DNA from: Hyalangium minutum | GTDB taxonomy: Bacteria; Myxococcota; Myxococcia; Myxococcales; Myxococcaceae | NCBI RefSeq assembly: GCF_000737315.1 | Contig: NZ_JMCB01000006.1 | Span: 558,001 to 622,000, forward strand | Direction: 5' to 3' | DNA length: 64,000 nucleotides | Part shown: one piece after another, positions 7,479 to 57,025 of the stretch | Position numbering within the stretch: position 1 is the first letter of the stretch | How the letters are laid out: every line of letters starts with the position of its first letter | Program-made: the position numbers and the translations under genes | Notes under the pieces: model-generated | Database searches by the model: none | Told to the model about the DNA's origin: nothing | The model's input: the letters and a program-made list of their open reading frames with translations, nothing else

Positions 7479-8537
7479 TCAGCGCATGCTCGAGATCCAC
7501 TCCGAGATGAGCGCGAGGCCCTCGGGGTCGGTGAGGTGCGAGGCCGTGGGCGGCATCTGCTGCTCGGTGCCGCGGATGGTCATGCGGTGGTAGACGCAGC
7601 TCCCCTGGGGGTTGCCCGGATCAATGCGCCGGGTGATCCCGGGGGTGGCGAACTTCTCCACGGCCACGCCGATCCCCGTGCGGTAGGTGTCCGTGTCGGC
7701 GGCGTTCACGTCCTTCACGGAGAGCCTCAGGCTGAACGGGTTGTTGAACTCGATGCCCGTGGAGTTGTGGCAGTTGCCGCAGTTGGCGTGGAGGTAGCCG
7801 AGCGCGGCGGACTCCACGGAGTTGCCGGGGGCCTTGAAGGCCGCGGCCGGCGCCACGGTGAGCCGGCCCTCCTGGACGAGCGTGCTCAGCGTCACGCCGC
7901 TCCCCTCGTGGCTGAGCTGCAGCGCGCTGAAGCCGAGCGCCTGCTCCGACAAATAGGAGTGGCACGTCTTACAAGTCTTCGCCGCGGGGATGTCGTGGCC
8001 CGTGCCCTGGGCGCGGGTCTGCCCATAGGCGACATAGTCCGCATCCGAGCCATCCGCGCGCCAGGCGTACGCCCCGAGGATGAAGTCCTTGGGGCCCGTG
8101 CCATAGCGGGCGATGAAGCGCGTCTCCACCAGCTTGCCCTCGGCGGTGAAGTCCTTCCACAGGCGCGCCCCCACCGGGAGCACCCAGTGGTCCATGTCGC
8201 TCGTGTCGATCTGGCAGCCGTCCGGCAGCTGGACATAGCGGCGCTTCACCGCCGCGTCGGACCAGAGCGCGTAGCGCGGGGAGAACTCGCGCACCCCCGC
8301 CGCCAGGCTCCGGGTGGAGATGTCCTGGAAGAGCCCCGTCTCCGAGAGCGTGGCGGGGGCCTTCCCGCTCTCGAGCCCCGTCTGGAGCCCCGCGCAGGGG
8401 ACGTTCGGCTGCGGCGGGAGCGGATCCACGGGGGTGTCCGAGGAGCACGCCGCCAGCAACGACGAGGTGAGCAGGACCGTCAGCAGCTGGGCCCGGAGCC
8501 CTTCAAAGAGGAAAGAGAAGGTTGAGCTTCGCATCAT
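7479..8537 (-). CDS. Diheme c-type cytochrome lipoprotein (SO2930-like)
   Basis: Lipobox LAAC; CKTCH and CGNCH heme motifs; YALWSDAAVKRRY; distal QQMPP. Confidence 0.75.
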   Translation of the reverse strand: MMRSSTFSFLFEGLRAQLLTVLLTSSLLAACSSDTPVDPLPPQPNVPCAGLQTGLESGKAPATLSETGLFQDISTRSLAAGVREFSPRYALWSDAAVKRRYVQLPDGCQIDTSDMDHWVLPVGARLWKDFTAEGKLVETRFIARYGTGPKDFILGAYAWRADGSDADYVAYGQTRAQGTGHDIPAAKTCKTCHSYLSEQALGFSALQLSHEGSGVTLSTLVQEGRLTVAPAAAFKAPGNSVESAALGYLHANCGNCHNSTGIEFNNPFSLRLSVKDVNAADTDTYRTGIGVAVEKFATPGITRRIDPGNPQGSCVYHRMTIRGTEQQMPPTASHLTDPEGLALISEWISSMR

Positions 8538-44550: not shown

Positions 44551-44812
44551 GGAGCAGGAAGCAAGCGTTCCGAGTGGAGTGCAGAGGCCCCCTACCCGGG
44601 GCCACCTTGCAAAACGCAAGATTCACCCCAGGGTCAGGCTGCAACGGGCAAGGTCGATGTCCGCTCCAGGCACTGTTTGGGGAGCATGCGAGGAGCGGGG
44701 CTCCTCACACCGCTTCAAGAGCAGGCCGTGGGGACCCAAATTTCAGAAAGGATCAGCACCCGCAGAGAGGCGGTAAGAGACTCCGGTTCTGCCGAGCGTG
44801 GAACCGTCCGGG

Positions 44813-45747: not shown

Positions 45748-45939
45748 GGAAGCGCTCGGGTTCCGGAGCCTTCTGAAGGATGGGACGCCTTCGAGGGATA
45801 CCCCGCCGGAAGCAAGTGAGACGAGGTTGGCTCACTCGGTCAGGTGACGGCCGTGGGGCCCCAAAAGGGTGCAAGCGGCAGCGCTCTCCTGTATTTTCAG
45901 CTTCTCGAGAAAAGCAGGTGAGTCACGTGGGAGAGCAAG

Positions 45940-46602
45940 ATGGGCTGGAGACTTCAGGGTGTTGGGGTGCTGTGTGTTATAGGCAGCGTCCTGACATGCT
46001 CAAGCCCCAACCCCAACCTGCGCGCCACCCGCTTACCTGACGGGAGCATCGAGGTGAAGGGGCCACTGGCGGGCCCCTTTTCAACTCTGGAGGCACTGGC
46101 CATGAACGCGTGTGCAATCGTGACCAGTCAACCCGGGGCGTCAAACGGTGTATATGGGTTTGAGTATTGCGCCCTGAACTACTATTCACCCCAGGAGAAG
46201 GCGTACTTCCTCAGCTACCTCTCCGATTTCAAGAACAGGCCCGACACGACTACCAAGACCTGTGCGCTCCCCAGGTTGCTGGATGACGCTGGCCATAGAG
46301 ACGCAATCATCATCGGTGGTGTTCATGGACATCCCCACAACCGGCGTTTTTCAAGATCTGACTTGAGCATCTGGTCGAACTGGAATCCCACTCGTTTCAA
46401 GGACAAAACCACCGAGCACCTATGGGATCGCCATCTCATGCTTTTCTACCGCGAGAGAACCGGCGAATGCAGAACCTACCTGTACAACCAGGCAACACGA
46501 ATTGTCCATGCACTGCGCAATGACAAATGGGTTGCTATCGGCAAAGCCTACAACGACGTGGGTGATATCCAGATGTTCGAAGGCCAGGATTGGCTGCCTT
46601 GA
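45940..46602 (+). CDS. Exported protein with JAB/MPN-like (DUF4329-type) motif, putative toxin
   Basis: N-terminal signal with Cys; upstream Glu in FEYC; HGHPHNRRFSRSD matches HxH-x6-S-x2-D. Confidence 0.55.
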   Translation: MGWRLQGVGVLCVIGSVLTCSSPNPNLRATRLPDGSIEVKGPLAGPFSTLEALAMNACAIVTSQPGASNGVYGFEYCALNYYSPQEKAYFLSYLSDFKNRPDTTTKTCALPRLLDDAGHRDAIIIGGVHGHPHNRRFSRSDLSIWSNWNPTRFKDKTTEHLWDRHLMLFYRERTGECRTYLYNQATRIVHALRNDKWVAIGKAYNDVGDIQMFEGQDWLP

Positions 46603-46683
46603 GCAAGAGCATCACGGCAAGGAGCGCGGGAACGAATCGCAACCGCAGGGCCTACTGGCAACACCCCACCGAGGCGAAGCGAC

Positions 46684-47103
46684 ATGAGGCTTCTTCTTCC
46701 TTCTCTACTCTGTTGCGCCAGCATGCTGGCGGGCTGCTCTTTCTTTGGGTACTACAAACAGGAAAAGCCAATCTGGGCACATCCTGAGGAGGGCGCCAAG
46801 GTTCAGTTCTTGAACTCATTGGAGGGAGGAACCCGGCTGACCGGGCCCATGATGGCAGCCTTGAAGGTAGCCATGGATGACTACCTTCCTCCCAGCGTCA
46901 GGGCTGAAGACCAGAAGTATCCGGCTGGCAAGTGCCTCGCCCAGTGGAAGTACATCAACGTCACGGTTTTCCAGGCCAGCGATGACCTCTTCTTCGTGCT
47001 CTTCATTCCGGATCTCTCCCACTGCGGGCCCGGGTTCATCGAACTGGACGCGGGTGCTGAGTACGCGATTGATGGCAAGGGGCGCATTCTCGCCAAGCAG
47101 TGA
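46684..47103 (+). CDS. Hypothetical lipoprotein (putative cognate immunity)
   Basis: Lipobox LAGC; two further Cys; directly downstream of the JAB-like gene. Confidence 0.6.
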   Translation: MRLLLPSLLCCASMLAGCSFFGYYKQEKPIWAHPEEGAKVQFLNSLEGGTRLTGPMMAALKVAMDDYLPPSVRAEDQKYPAGKCLAQWKYINVTVFQASDDLFFVLFIPDLSHCGPGFIELDAGAEYAIDGKGRILAKQ

Positions 47104-47240
47104 CCCGGTTCGCCTCTGGAGCCAACCCTGCCCAGGTGGGAGGACCGCTGAGTTTCATGGGCGGGCCGTGGGGACCCATTTGCCCTTCCAGTAGCACGAG
47201 GAAAGGCCCCTGGGTCCTCTCCTCTCTCCTGGAGACGGCC

Positions 47241-47660
47241 ATGGCCAAGGCGTACAGCTACCTGCGATTCAGCACCCCCGAGCAAATGAAGGGAGATTCC
47301 CACCGGCGGCAAAGCACCCTCGCCCAGAAGTACGCGGTAGATCACCACCTGGACCTGGACGACAGGTTGACGTTCAAGGACTTGGGGGTGAGTGCCTTCC
47401 GGGGCAAGAACGCGGGGGAAGATGGACAGCTTGGAGCCTTCCTCGCTGCCGTAGAGGCTGGGAAAGTGGAACCGGGTTCGTACCTGCTTGTTGAGAGCCT
47501 GGACCGCATCAGCCGCGAAGCAGCCTGGATTGCACTTGGCACCCTGACGAACATCCTTGCTCGGGGGATCTCGCTCGTGACGCTCTATGACGGGAAGGTC
47601 TACTCCCAAGCGTCGATGACGATGAACCCCATGGACCTCATGTTGGAAACGACCCTCTGA
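47241..47660 (+). pseudogene. Truncated large serine recombinase (catalytic domain only)
   Basis: MAKAYSYLRFSTPEQ (catalytic Ser), DLGVSAF and VESLDRISR motifs; ends abruptly after NPMDLM at 139 aa, with no DNA-binding domains. Confidence 0.85.
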
Positions 47661-47817
47661 TAACGCGGGTTTTCGATCGCGGGGATCGCGGCGAAGCGCG
47701 GGATCGTCCTCCCGGATTAGGATCAGGAACTCGCAAAATCGGTGGGTTAGCGAGCTTCGGGTCGCGGGCTCTCCAACTCCTGGCTGACCGCGCTGGGCAG
47801 GATCGTTCTGAACGATC

Positions 47818-47875
47818 GCGTCGAGAAGCCCCTGTTTTGCGTCCGCTTCTTGGCAAAACAGGGGCTTCTCGACGC
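47818..47875. repeat. Perfect 23-bp inverted repeat with 12-nt spacer
   Basis: GCGTCGAGAAGCCCCTGTTTTGC ... GCAAAACAGGGGCTTCTCGACGC. Confidence 0.85.
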
Positions 47876-48371
47876 CACAGGGGGCCCGGGGGCTGTAGGC
47901 CCCTGGAACTCGCAAGTGCGGGCACTGTCTTGGTTTTTCGATCAGATCAGCCCGCGCTCAAGGTGAGTCGCGCTCGCGACCGCCGCGATCGTTACGCCGC
48001 GCTTCTTGAGGATCGTCTCCACTCCGCACGGCCGACAGAGCCCAGGGCACTCCCGAATGTTGCAGCACTTCCCCGTCCCACCACACTCGGCGCATACCAG
48101 CCGAGCATTCCCCTGACTGCCGGCGTCCTTTGTGGGAGCAGGACTGGACTGGTCCTCCTGTCCTCGCCCGAATGCCCCCCCGTCTAACCCTGTGGAAGGA
48201 GAAGAGACTTTCCCCCCTCCACCCTTCAAAACTGCCTTACGCCTTGAAGGCCCTGAAAGGCCCTAGGAGCCACGGAAGGTGGCGCGGCCCCCCACAGAGG
48301 GTTGCCCGGCAACGTGGCCCTGCGAGGCCCCTGGAGGCCCTGGAGGGGCTGTTTGAGGCTGGGGGGCCTTA

Positions 48372-48450
48372 GAACTCCTAACAAAAATCAGCTTTGAGGG
48401 GCCTCTCCCCTCGGGGCGGTGGCTCCAGCCCTTATTTTTGTTAGGAGTTC
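48372..48450. mobile_element. 79-bp MITE-like element (17-bp TIRs, TTA flanking direct repeats)
   Basis: TTA|GAACTCCTAACAAAAAT...ATTTTTGTTAGGAGTTC|TTA. Confidence 0.55.
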
Positions 48451-48475
48451 TTAACCAGAAACCAGCGGAGCAGGC

Positions 48476-48730
48476 TTAAAGCCGCACACCAACAGCACCA
48501 TGGATCGACGCTTCCACAAGAGTACGCACCTGCGCTTGAAGCATGTCCAAGTCGGACTGACCAGAGCGGTGCAGGATGCCACCAGGCGTCCCCCGAAGTT
48601 CAGCATCGCATCTGACAGTCGCGTCCCAAATGATCACTTGGGGGCTGTCGCCTGCTCTGAACTTCGCTTCGTACGTGTACCTCTGCATGCTGTGCGGGTG
48701 TTCGTACTCTCCGCTGAACTTCCAAGCCAT
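48476..48730 (-). CDS. Small hypothetical protein (84 aa)
   Basis: GAGG RBS before ATG 48730; lies downstream of the bstA-like gene. Confidence 0.45.
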   Translation of the reverse strand: MAWKFSGEYEHPHSMQRYTYEAKFRAGDSPQVIIWDATVRCDAELRGTPGGILHRSGQSDLDMLQAQVRTLVEASIHGAVGVRL

Positions 48731-48817
48731 AGTGCGTGCCTCGTTGAGCGGGGAGGGAGGTATCCCCAGCGGGTGGTCGGCATCGTGGCCCATAAGGGAC
48801 TGAGGCTCTAAGTGGGG

Positions 48818-49684
48818 CTAAGCGTCAGGCAGCTTCTTCGGATCGACGGCAGCGAGGATCGCATCAACTGCGCGAGCAGGTAGGACGCCCTTGCTCACTT
48901 GGCGCGTGAGGTACTTAGGGAACTTCTCGGGCAGGTAGGTTTCCTGCATCCAGATCCAGAACTCACTAAGGGCCGCGAGAGGATAGATCCACGCCTCAAC
49001 CCCCCCTTTCGCCTGCGGGAAATAGGCCGGGTAGCGGTGCGGGTACTTCTTACGCTTGCCGAGCCGCGCCTGTGCGCCGCTTTCCTCCCAGTACTGAGAC
49101 CAAGCCATCCCGATGCTGATGTCTGGCACCGTATGTTCGTCCAGCGGGAGTCCGTTCTGAGCAGCGGTCACTACCACGTCGCCCATTTCCCGGAACACGC
49201 TGAAGTAACCAGCGGGGAGGGGGTTCAACATGAGGCGGTCGTAGTACTTCCGCCAGTGCTCAGGAACGGCCTGATTCTGAGTAGGGGTGTACCCGAGTGC
49301 GTTGTAGACGAACGCCTTCATACCGGCATGAGCAAACTTCCGGTACACGTCCCGCGCTTTCTTACTCGGCTGAGCAACCTCGAACGCGTAGTAATCTAGG
49401 AAGACCATGCAGACGTCATCGGGGTATGGGTGCTCAGTGCCTCCAGTCTGCAGATGCAGGGTCCGGCGTGTGATCCCCGCCTTCATGAGCATCCTGGCCA
49501 GCTTCCCGTCCCGCTTGCCCTTGGACCAGTTGGCACCCTGCGCAATGACGGCACTTGGAACAACGCCACAAGCGCGCGCAAGCCCACGTGCTGAGAGATA
49601 GGCAGTCCCGTCTTCCAGCACGCCCATCTGCACCTCGTTGATCGTCTTCTCGACTACAACCTTCATCGGCAGTGCGAGTTGCAA
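48818..49684 (-). CDS. bstA: BstA-like antiphage (abortive infection) protein
   Basis: QMGVLEDGTAYLSARGLARACGV, YPDDVCMVFLDYYAFE, PDISIG..W..YW, YP.YFPQA, YP..AL.EF..W....YL..KFPKYL: the motif series I recall for BstA. TTG start with GGAGG RBS; lower GC3. Confidence 0.8.
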   Translation of the reverse strand: MQLALPMKVVVEKTINEVQMGVLEDGTAYLSARGLARACGVVPSAVIAQGANWSKGKRDGKLARMLMKAGITRRTLHLQTGGTEHPYPDDVCMVFLDYYAFEVAQPSKKARDVYRKFAHAGMKAFVYNALGYTPTQNQAVPEHWRKYYDRLMLNPLPAGYFSVFREMGDVVVTAAQNGLPLDEHTVPDISIGMAWSQYWEESGAQARLGKRKKYPHRYPAYFPQAKGGVEAWIYPLAALSEFWIWMQETYLPEKFPKYLTRQVSKGVLPARAVDAILAAVDPKKLPDA

Positions 49685-50186
49685 GGTGGGTACCTCCCCC
49701 TGTTTCGTGGCTACGCGGTACAGGATGCTTCACGTAGGGTGTCCGACTGGACTGACCATACGTGACATAGTATGCCCAGGCACATCCGTTCAGTCAACCC
49801 AGCCCCTTCCCTACATGCCCGTAAAGGCCCCTGGCTGGCCTCAGGATCCACGAAGCGGAGAGAGAGATCCCCCGGGTGAGGCGCGGCCCCTCCAGCGCTT
49901 GGCGGCCCCTTTCCGTCGATCTGAAGCGCTTCTGTGGTCTACAGAACGGGACTCAGAGGCTCCGTGCTTTTGGTGGCGATTTTCGCGGGGCCACCCTTGG
50001 TCTTTCCCGCTCAAAGTTCTCCCCCTGTACCCCTAGGGCCCACCCCCAGTGTGGCCAATGCCCCTGCCCCATCCCGGTTCCCGCTATGGCGGTCTCCGTC
50101 TGGAGGGGCGAATGAAGAGGACCTCGCGGGGCACTACCCGAGAGTCCGAGCCACCGGACTTCACTACCCGCAAAGCGGAAGGCACT

Positions 50187-50215
50187 GAGGGTCTGTTGCG
50201 GGACCCTCTTTTTTT
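50187..50215 (+). terminator. Intrinsic terminator
   Basis: GAGGGTC-N8-GACCCTC followed by T7. Confidence 0.8.
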
Positions 50216-50305
50216 GCTATTTGGGTCACCACGGCCCGAACCTGTTCATGGGCAGGCCCCCAAAAACCCAGGCGTTCAACGGAAGAGGGGCGAGAAGCAC
50301 TTCCT

Positions 50306-51037
50306 TCACGCCCCAGTGGCCGGATCCCACCCGTAGAAGCGCTTCAGCTCCTCGTACAGGTCCGGCGTGCGCTCCTTCATCTGCCGGGGCTTCTCGAAGA
50401 AGGACTCTGTCGCCACCGCGAAGAACTCCGCCTCGTTCAGCGCGCCGTAGTCGTCCATCACCTTGCGCTCCTGCGGCCGGCCCTCCCGGAGCGCCTGGTA
50501 GTGCTCGTCCATCACCGCTGCCCACGCGCGATAGTGCGAGTACTCCCGCAGCCTCGGTGTCCCATCGAAGGCACCGTCCGCGCGATCCAGCGCATGGGCG
50601 AACTCGTGCGCCGCCGTGTCGTGCCCATCCCTCGGGTTACTCAGCCCCGCCAGCACCGCCTGCCACGAGAGGATCACCTGCCCCCAGTGCTTCGCCTCGC
50701 CCAGCACCTCCCCGGTTCGCTCCGGCAACTTGAACGAACCCGGGTAAACGATGATCTCCCTCAGCCGGTCGTAGTACCCGAGCCCCAGGTGCAGCACGAG
50801 CTGCACCGCCGTGGCCCCCACCACCACGCGCACCTCGTCCGTAATCTCGAAGCCGTTGGCTCCGATGAACTCCTTCTCCCAGACGAACACCTTCAGGAAG
50901 TCCTGGAAGCGCTGGCGCAGCTCCGGCGAGAGCACTCGGAAGACCGGCACGCGCGCCTCCAGGTAGCCCAGCCACTCGGGCGGAAAGGGCCGGCGCAGCA
51001 ACTGTCGTCGGTGAAACCAGCGGAAGGGACCAGCCAT
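50306..51037 (-). CDS. MtfA/M90 family zinc peptidase
   Basis: AHEFAHALD zinc motif; YGALNEAEFFAVATESFFEKP. Confidence 0.9.
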   Translation of the reverse strand: MAGPFRWFHRRQLLRRPFPPEWLGYLEARVPVFRVLSPELRQRFQDFLKVFVWEKEFIGANGFEITDEVRVVVGATAVQLVLHLGLGYYDRLREIIVYPGSFKLPERTGEVLGEAKHWGQVILSWQAVLAGLSNPRDGHDTAAHEFAHALDRADGAFDGTPRLREYSHYRAWAAVMDEHYQALREGRPQERKVMDDYGALNEAEFFAVATESFFEKPRQMKERTPDLYEELKRFYGWDPATGA

Positions 51038-56320: not shown

Positions 56321-57025
56321 GTGACGGAGTCAGGTGCGGGTGGAGCATCGGAGCGGCCCGAGGGCCAGCGCACGGTGGAGTGCGCCGATGCGCGGGTGTG
56401 GCTGGAGGGCCGGCAGGTGCTGGAGGGCTGCTCGGCCATCACCTCGCTGCCGGACGTGTCCGAGTTCCCCGAGCTCTCGCTGGCCGAGTGGAAGCAGTGG
56501 TTCATCCGCGCGGCCGTCCTCGTCATGTCGAAGGTGCCAGCGCAGGGCGTGGCCATCTTCTACCAGACCGATGTGAAGAAGGACGGGGCCTGGGTGGACA
56601 AGGGGTACCTCATCAGCAAGGCCGCCGAGGAGGCCGGCTGCGAGCTGCTCTGGCACAAGGTGGTGTGCCGGCGGCCCCCCGGCACGGTGACGTTCGGGCG
56701 CCCTGCGTACTCGCACATGCTGTGCTTCTCGCGAGGCATCCGCGTGGACCTGGGCAAGGCCACGCCGGATGTGCTGCCCGACGCGGGCGAGGTGACGTGG
56801 ACGCGCGGCATGGGCCTGCACGCCTGTCTGGCGGCGTGCCGCTTCATCCTCGAGCACACGGCGACGCGCACGGTGGTTGATCCGTTCTGTGGCCACGGCA
56901 CGGTGCTCGCGGTGGCCAACGCGCTGGGCCTGGACGCGGTGGGCGTGGAGCTCAGCCGCAAGCGCGCGAAGAAGGCCCGTGTTCTCCGAGTCACACTGGA
57001 CCGCACAGGCGCCCCCGCCCTTTAG
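56321..57025 (+). CDS. SAM-dependent methyltransferase (beta-class DNA-MTase-like motif order)
   Basis: ITSLPD near the N-terminus, VVDPFCGHGT SAM motif near the C-terminus. Confidence 0.7.
   Translation: MTESGAGGASERPEGQRTVECADARVWLEGRQVLEGCSAITSLPDVSEFPELSLAEWKQWFIRAAVLVMSKVPAQGVAIFYQTDVKKDGAWVDKGYLISKAAEEAGCELLWHKVVCRRPPGTVTFGRPAYSHMLCFSRGIRVDLGKATPDVLPDAGEVTWTRGMGLHACLAACRFILEHTATRTVVDPFCGHGTVLAVANALGLDAVGVELSRKRAKKARVLRVTLDRTGAPAL

Follow-up and report, generated by a model that had tools for sequence, protein, structure and literature searches.

A BstA-family abortive-infection candidate on the probable remnant of a serine-recombinase element in a myxobacterium

BstA of Salmonella prophage BTP1 is a single-protein abortive-infection system that is accompanied by self-immunity DNA, the aba element (Owen et al. 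2021, PMC8585504). A gene resembling bstA lies at 48818-49684, on the minus strand, of the 64,000-nucleotide stretch of the Hyalangium minutum genome analysed here (hereafter, the window), and its presence raises the question of what kind of DNA carries such a gene in a myxobacterium and whether it came with an aba of its own. An earlier note on this DNA, made from the sequence alone, had described an active defence gene left by a prophage, with a new aba variant expected around 49660-49800. The explanation that we favour as a whole, with a probability of about 0.6, is that an intact BstA is the cargo of a dead recombinase element and has no canonical aba. According to this explanation, 48818-49684 would encode an intact BstA-family abortive-infection protein that is under selection, its transcription probably being driven by its own promoter at about 49797-49769, and the gene would be cargo of a 3.1-kilobase (kb) remnant (47154-50246) of a large-serine-recombinase integrative element of about 6 kb. 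By homology with BTP1 BstA, the protein would bind where the DNA of an infecting phage is being replicated, stop that replication and abort the infection; the locus would be without a canonical aba, and its carrier would have no replicating genome to protect.

The BstA homologue and its relatives

Between 48818 and 49800, where the earlier note had placed the gene, the single open reading frame (ORF) with a coding-type GC pattern is 48818-49684 on the minus strand, whose product of 288 amino acids (aa) is similar to BstA proteins along its full length. The earliest possible start past an in-frame stop is the TTG at 49684-49682, and a Shine-Dalgarno sequence read from the DNA, GGGGGAGG (49693-49700, minus strand), precedes it with an 8-nucleotide (nt) spacer and is identical in the closest relative, L001. 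Public records give the product in three versions, namely a C-terminal piece of 43 aa from Met246, a 282-aa protein from the ATG at 49666 (P0001) and a 288-aa protein from the TTG (P0122). Because residues 2-6 (QLALP) match an N-terminal QLxLP motif common to most homologues, the BstA profile alignment begins at residue 2 and one public annotation has 288 aa, the TTG appears to be a better call than the ATG six codons downstream, and the TTG start with a strong ribosome-binding site proposed in the earlier note was thus borne out.

Assignment to the BstA family is almost certain from sequence comparison. The earlier note had recognised BstA-type motifs along the full ORF and had proposed a comparison with BstA by hidden Markov model; the PADLOC BstA profile PDLC02356 matches with an expectation value (E) of 4.6e-97 over profile positions 6-288 of 292, and PHROG 6287, annotated as "BstA abortive infection system, replication inhibitor", matches with E 4.6e-75. 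In a tblastn search against phage records, BTP1 BstA (gene st313-td) was found with 37.6% identity over residues 10-287 (E 7e-55, 97% of the query). All family-invariant columns are kept in the window protein in alignments of 24 and 61 members, with 18/18 in the latter. Scans with Pfam and NCBIfam profiles gave no match, the Pfam copy that was scanned lacking the BstA_C model; PF26567 (BstA_C) is precomputed on P0001 and on every listed database homologue. The gene would be flagged automatically by PADLOC or DefenseFinder, and a "hypothetical protein" thereby becomes a confidently assigned single-gene anti-phage candidate in a myxobacterium.

The closest relatives of the protein come from metagenomes only, with 83% amino-acid identity for L001 and L002 and 63% for L003, followed by homologues in Sorangium (L004, 54%), on a viral contig (L038, 51%) and in a metagenome-assembled genome of Kofleriaceae (L005, 45%). 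No close relative above 45% identity was found in species-representative genomes, and none above 51% in JGI metagenome contigs. The ratio of nonsynonymous to synonymous substitution rates (dN/dS) is 0.22 against L001 and 0.27 against L003, which indicates that the gene, apparently intact, is under purifying selection. Synonymous divergence from L001 is uneven along the gene, dS being about 0.65 over codons 30-150, compared with 0.15 before them (codons 1-30) and about 0.2 (0.15-0.25) after them (codons 150-288), a pattern that looks like a recombination mosaic over the N-terminal putative DNA-binding domain. The family is common on viral contigs, with 123 relatives in IMG/VR; in the literature, we found no specific report of BstA in myxobacteria. 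To our knowledge, phage defence has hardly been tested experimentally in myxobacteria.

An AlphaFold2 model built from a 61-sequence alignment without BTP1 has a mean predicted local distance difference test score (pLDDT) of 93.8, with a sole dip at residues 131-150, and a predicted template modelling score of 0.65. Its layout consists of an N-terminal DNA-binding-like domain (about residues 1-130), a low-confidence linker (about 131-150) and the C-terminal BstA_C domain, and the two-domain layout inferred for BTP1 BstA by Owen et al. (PMC8585504) is thus reproduced by the predicted model; the family is expected to have an N-terminal KilA-N-like DNA-binding domain and a C-terminal domain that meet near residue 150. 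A fold search of the model against the Protein Data Bank (PDB) found no similar solved structure, and the best PDB profile match had E 0.052. Among predicted viral structures, the best matches, which are weak (E 1e-4, template modelling scores 0.24-0.37), are to folds of the antirepressor, KilA and Bro-N type; together with the PADLOC "HTH" profile, which matches residues 25-135, and the loss of bstA from the orthologous site L035 of a related genome, they could be taken to mean that the protein is no defence factor, being instead either an inert relic or an element regulator of the KilA-N/antirepressor type. We consider this very unlikely, since the fold matches are weak, the homology to a tested BstA is full-length and includes the BstA_C domain, a dN/dS of 0.22 argues against a relic, and the BstA homologues of three genera all showed anti-phage activity (PMC8585504). 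An active anti-phage function of the window BstA is on balance probable.

The carrier segment

The segment that carries bstA (47154-50246, 3.1 kb) adjoins an M90 peptidase gene and is bounded by an inverted pair of ends resembling attachment (att) sites. Similarity to L001 at the DNA level is confined to exactly two stretches, 50238-48815 (87% identity; bstA and its whole upstream arm) and 47353-47161 (95%), and both end at an inverted pair of 17 nt, 47162-47178 CGGGCCGTGGGGACCCA and 50222-50238 TGGGTCACCACGGCCCG, whose copies are 94% complementary. The similarity to L035 also stops at the att-like ends. The end beside bstA, GGGCCGTGGTGACCCAAAT (50218-50246, minus strand), is the inverted partner of 47162-47178 and the place where L001 homology ends; the end beside the recombinase, CATGGGCGGGCCGTGGGGACCCATTT (47154-47180, plus strand), is homologous to the 36-nt inverted ends of an intact relative, L003. 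Just inside the latter end, 47241-47660 on the plus strand encodes a truncated large serine recombinase with the catalytic domain only (139 codons from the ATG at 47241, homologous through residue 133), which matches positions 1-113 of 145 of Pfam Resolvase, lacks the Recombinase and zinc-ribbon domains, and shares 73% identity with the first 133 residues of the 519-aa L003 recombinase. In L003, a 36-nt inverted pair (2097-2132 and 8002-8037) encloses 5.9 kb with bstA, a 62-aa ORF, an Xre-type regulator, a 199-aa ORF and the 519-aa large serine recombinase, in which the Resolvase, Recombinase and zinc-ribbon domains are all present.

Comparison of the related loci suggests a history for this element. 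The window has lost everything of the recombinase past codon 133, and in L001 only 37 of its codons survive, along with the Xre gene's C-terminal end. L035/L036, the orthologous site in a related genome (2250-4186, corresponding to window 47164-50246), has the same M90 peptidase and beta-helix neighbours, the same ends and a recombinase remnant with the same breakpoint, and L035 shares the terminal 86 nt including an outward-pointing terminator; it holds 1.4 kb of unrelated sequence in place of bstA and its arm, and no bstA. Because ends, neighbours and breakpoint are shared, the insertion and the truncation of the recombinase appear to be older than the split of the window and L035/L036 lineages, the element interior differing between the two. 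In L001 (5770-8755), the flank sequences at the element ends are swapped relative to the window, and the whole element is accordingly inverted there between its inverted ends. As the window recombinase is cut off after its catalytic domain, the element is predicted to be immobile now. BstA would thus travel on a 6-kb recombinase element and then be retained past the death of that element, and in this respect the carrier matters more than the gene.

A foreign origin of the gene is supported by composition, the GC content being 0.61 in bstA against about 0.69 in its surroundings, with a dip to 0.56-0.62 over 46-50 kb. The reading of the earlier note is thus partly supported, as regards the family of the gene, its apparent intactness with purifying selection, and its foreign origin. 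An origin from a prophage was not supported. Among ORFs between 30.4 and 63.8 kb with coding-type GC at the third codon position (GC3), Pfam and NCBIfam scans identified a methyl-accepting chemotaxis protein, two-component systems, a Kdp operon, a porin, M90 and M16 peptidases, a beta-helix protein and methyltransferases, and no phage-related domain was found in these scanned ORFs, which reach from 18 kb before to 14 kb after the gene, the window ending at 64 kb. By the criterion of Owen et al., which considers phage genes within 20 kb on either side, the locus is, as judged from these predicted domains, "prophage-independent". No transfer RNA or transfer-messenger RNA integration site was found in the window.

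The segment might nevertheless be the leftover of a true prophage, of which the integrase, the immunity regulator and bstA survived a deletion of the structural and replication genes. Consistent with such an origin, integrases sit at prophage ends, the bstA of L003 lies near an Xre/CI-type regulator as in BTP1, BstA relatives occur on the IMG/VR viral contigs mentioned above, and 79% of homologues are prophage-associated (PMC8585504). However, no phage structural, lysis or replication gene was found in the window, L001 or L003 copies; both ends and an intact recombinase lie within 5.9 kb in L003; the recombinase is present only in L001-L003 among the first 34 bstA loci; and IMG/VR viral contigs contain no relative of the recombinase above 23% identity. 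A prophage leftover is therefore quite unlikely in our judgement, and the carrier is very probably, from its sequence, the remnant of a recombinase element rather than a recognisable prophage.

Several further features of the segment and its neighbourhood were observed. The att-like motif TTCA[AT]G.G..GGCCGTG[GA]GGACCCAAA has four copies within 5.5 kb (44724-44740, 45849-45865 and 47164-47180 on the plus strand and 50220-50236 on the minus strand), against about 0.6 expected by chance in the 64-kb window, and also occurs between genes in related loci (L035 1346, 2250 and 4176; L001 3316, 5780 and 8726). This suggests that several modules may be bounded by one recombination site, either via serial integration or as cassette-like units. 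The stretch between two motif copies at 45940-47103 has the lowest GC content of the window (0.56) and holds two plus-strand ORFs (220 and 139 aa) without family assignment. The decayed interior of the element (47661-48817) resembles the interiors of L001, L003 and L035 in neither DNA nor protein sequence, and contains long hairpins at 47818-47875 and 48371-48451, one with a perfect 23-nt stem and a 12-nt loop that is unique in the window and the other with a 21-nt stem (95% complementary) and a 39-nt loop. Downstream of bstA, the interior also contains an unsupported 105-aa ORF (48476-48793) without any Pfam, PHROG or PADLOC match; this ORF and the small ORFs of L001, L003 and L036 were considered as partner genes and rejected, none of them having a PHROG or PADLOC assignment, the Xre regulator excepted. 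At the opposite end, an intrinsic-terminator-like hairpin with a T7 run (50187-50215, plus strand) lies just inside the element and points out of it; L001 and the bstA-less L035 share it, and no plus-strand gene or RNA that it would serve was found. Farther away, a 234-aa ORF at 56321-57025 (plus strand) has a short C-terminal match to the DNA methylase profile N6_N4_Mtase (E 3e-6, profile positions 183-217 only). The host was correctly read as a myxobacterium in the earlier note and is Archangiaceae-like, its KdpA sharing 90% identity with the Hyalangium versicolor protein and 89% with the one of Archangium violaceum (87-89% across Archangium and other Hyalangium).

The aba question and the upstream arm

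The aba of BTP1 is a 63-bp DNA composed of 29 bp upstream and the first 34 bp of bstA, with direct repeats of CCCGCC at its ends; one substitution in one or the other of them is enough to abolish its function, it is active only on multicopy replicating DNA and inactive as a single chromosomal copy, and it is specific to its own BstA allele (PMC8585504). In the literature after 2021, no aba consensus or mechanism was found. We surveyed direct repeats in the 240 nt around the bstA start, anchored on the conserved MGVL motif, in the fetched loci (L004-L117, with BTP1 as L008, the window and its relatives), reduced to 64 sequences with less than 85% identity. The spacings of exact direct repeats (8 nt or longer) were found to peak at 56-57 nt, with 13 cases; any other spacing between 20 and 120 nt had 0-6. 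At 56-57 nt, repeats of at least 6 nt occur in 39/64 loci (3-10/64 at five control spacings) and repeats of at least 7 nt in 23/64 (1-6/64 at the same controls). Counted back from the MGVL anchor, the first copy is found at 113-143 nt and the second at 56-87 nt; the pair is located around the start codon. About 30 different repeat sequences were seen, the two copies within a locus being identical and co-varying (e.g., CCGGCCACCCATT, ACCGGCCACC, GGTTGCCACC, GGTGATCGGAT and TTGAAGGCC), and BTP1 fits the pattern with CCCGCCA at -28 and +28. L110 and L078 are among the loci with long repeats.

The 56-57-nt repeat pair therefore looks like a family-wide aba architecture, generalised from BTP1. This rule was not found stated in PMC8585504, and aba has been mapped so far only in BTP1; cognate immunity has also been shown for bstA loci of Klebsiella and E. 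coli. If the rule is true, aba would be predictable from sequence in most bstA loci (about 60% of those surveyed), which provides a means of locating aba elements, and the fixed spacing suggests a fixed geometry of BstA binding. The repeat rule, together with a small recombinase element as a vehicle of bstA and the retention of the gene on it, goes beyond routine annotation.

In the window, the canonical repeat interval maps to about 49683-49770, and the longest exact repeat at 56-57 nt there is 4 nt; in L003 it is 3 nt. Neither the window nor L001 has a repeat of at least 6 nt straddling the start codon, and the window has no similarity to the 63-bp BTP1 aba. A 9-mer repeat, ACTGCCGAT at 49673 and ACTGCCTAT at 49606, 67 nt apart, was considered as a pair of aba ends and rejected, its second copy not being conserved in L001. 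The nearest relatives outside the recombinase-borne clade do carry the pair: GATCGAC in Sorangium, TCACCA in Kofleriaceae, an 11-mer in L038 (GGTGATCGGAT in this group), and 8-mers in L009 and L039. The new aba variant around 49660-49800 announced in the earlier note was thus unsupported by the only sequence test, there being no direct-repeat pair at 56-57 nt. Because the window and L003 both lack this pair, their clade would be without a canonical aba, and the balance of the evidence tilts toward its having no functional aba. The missing aba would fit a carrier without replication or lytic genes, and hence with no replicating genome to protect.

Several points weigh against the explanation as a whole. 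The absence of the pair is not unusual, since repeats of 6 nt or more are also missing from 25 of the 64 loci; the repeat rule is our own generalisation and is validated only for BTP1; the 5.9-kb L003 element could itself be a prophage after extensive deletion, with integrase, immunity region and moron; and the KilA-N likeness of the N-terminal domain is unconfirmed, with no Pfam match and only weak matches to predicted viral structures. We also know of no myxophage that is restricted by BstA. Furthermore, an 80-nt block across the start codon (49659-49738, minus strand; -54 to +26 of the TTG) shows no difference between the window and L001 and could be an aba without repeats. It is the longest identical run in the 1.43-kb alignment, the next being 47 nt, and in simulations P for a run of this length was about 0.005 when identity was set to 87.4% and about 0.03 when it was 90-91%. 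Finally, an imperfect 12-mer pair, CGTAGCCACGAA (49715-49704) and TGTAGTCGAGAA (49658-49647), lies exactly 57 nt apart, with 8/12 matches in the window and 9/12 in L001.

A cognate aba without exact terminal repeats could accordingly be present in the block 49738-49659, which occupies the position equivalent to that of the BTP1 aba (-54 to +26 against -29 to +34); such an element would agree with the lack of exact repeats of at least 6 nt at 39% of bstA loci and with the allele specificity of aba sequences (PMC8585504). However, the block also covers the 5' untranslated region (UTR), the ribosome-binding site and the first 9 codons, all commonly conserved, which is a simpler explanation, and it is poorly conserved in L003. 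As to the 12-mer pair, 8/12 matches occur at 5 of 61 spacings in the same region (57 nt and four others), which is noise level, and, measured from the MGVL anchor, the pair is displaced downstream by about 30 nt from where canonical pairs lie. One mismatch in the BTP1 repeat kills aba (PMC8585504), and an immobile single-copy element would gain nothing from an aba. We therefore regard a repeat-less aba as rather unlikely and retain the explanation of a locus without aba. We tentatively go one step further, on a suggestion that we hold with less than even confidence: an aba-less form of BstA may exist on a minimal serine-recombinase element (BstA, Xre regulator, recombinase and two small ORFs) that never replicates lytically, and the window may contain a domesticated, immobilised copy of it. 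Taken with the repeat rule, this suggestion would also mean that aba is lost from carriers whose genome does not replicate and needs no such protection.

The interval 49660-49800 of the earlier note does cover the position at which aba-type repeats are found elsewhere (about 49683-49770); in the window, this position is taken up by a dyad and a promoter-like site, followed by the 5' UTR with the ribosome-binding site. The non-coding arm between bstA and the att-like end (49685-50217, minus strand) is 86-94% identical to L001 in 50-nt bins over 50210-49761, except for 80% in 49910-49861. Because 49685-50246 contains no ORF with a coding signature and the arm differs from the closest relative, L001, by several 1-nt indels, the upstream region appears to be truly non-coding, in agreement with the long non-coding region (49685 to about 50246) noted earlier. 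A small protein encoded in the arm was ruled out by the same 1-nt indels and the lack of a coding GC3 pattern. A known RNA family in the 560-nt arm was also rejected, with no Rfam match at gathering score in the whole window and chance-level hits only (E of at least 0.59) in 49600-50320, as was a structured RNA in 49800-50222, where folding z-scores were +0.54 and +0.02 and the covariation term of a three-sequence RNAalifold alignment was unfavourable.

A sigma-70-like promoter candidate, TTGACT-17-CATACT, lies at 49769-49797 on the minus strand, with one site found against 0.5 expected. It is the only such site in 48300-50400 and lies on the bstA strand, and its -35 hexamer with flanks is conserved across the window, L001 and L003. 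Directly past the -10 hexamer, a dyad TCACGTATGGT-N14-ACCCTACGTGA (49730-49765, minus strand; 91% complementary) keeps its core TCACGTA/TACGTGA in L001, and in L003 its position is occupied by another dyad, ACTCCT-N10-AGGAGT. The dyad may be a candidate operator or a 5' stem-loop, possibly the operator for an Xre regulator that was lost from the window.

Comparison with known systems

The window gene resembles BTP1 BstA in its full-length family match with 37.6% identity, in the two-domain layout of the predicted protein and in the retention of the family-invariant residues. Both are single genes with their own promoter, here a predicted one, on horizontally acquired DNA, and an Xre/CI-type regulator is found nearby in the intact relative L003 as in BTP1. 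Unlike BTP1, which is a 40-kb P22-like prophage in Gammaproteobacteria, the carrier in the window is a small serine-recombinase element, now a dead remnant, in a member of the Myxococcota; the repeat pair of 56-57 nt at the start codon is absent, and the protein begins with TTG and has an N-terminus that is 10 residues shorter. The homologues of Sorangium (L004), Kofleriaceae (L005) and the viral contig L038 belong to the same family and are nearest outside the recombinase-borne clade, but differ from the window in having the repeat pair at its canonical position and no adjacent serine recombinase.

The element itself is best compared with the elements and prophages of large serine recombinases of the phiC31/Bxb1 type. 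As in these, the intact relative L003 has a 519-aa three-domain recombinase at one end and imperfect inverted att-like ends. In contrast to phiC31/Bxb1-type carriers, the element is far smaller than a phage, the window keeps the catalytic domain only, and the end motif has additional copies between genes nearby (44724 and 45849).

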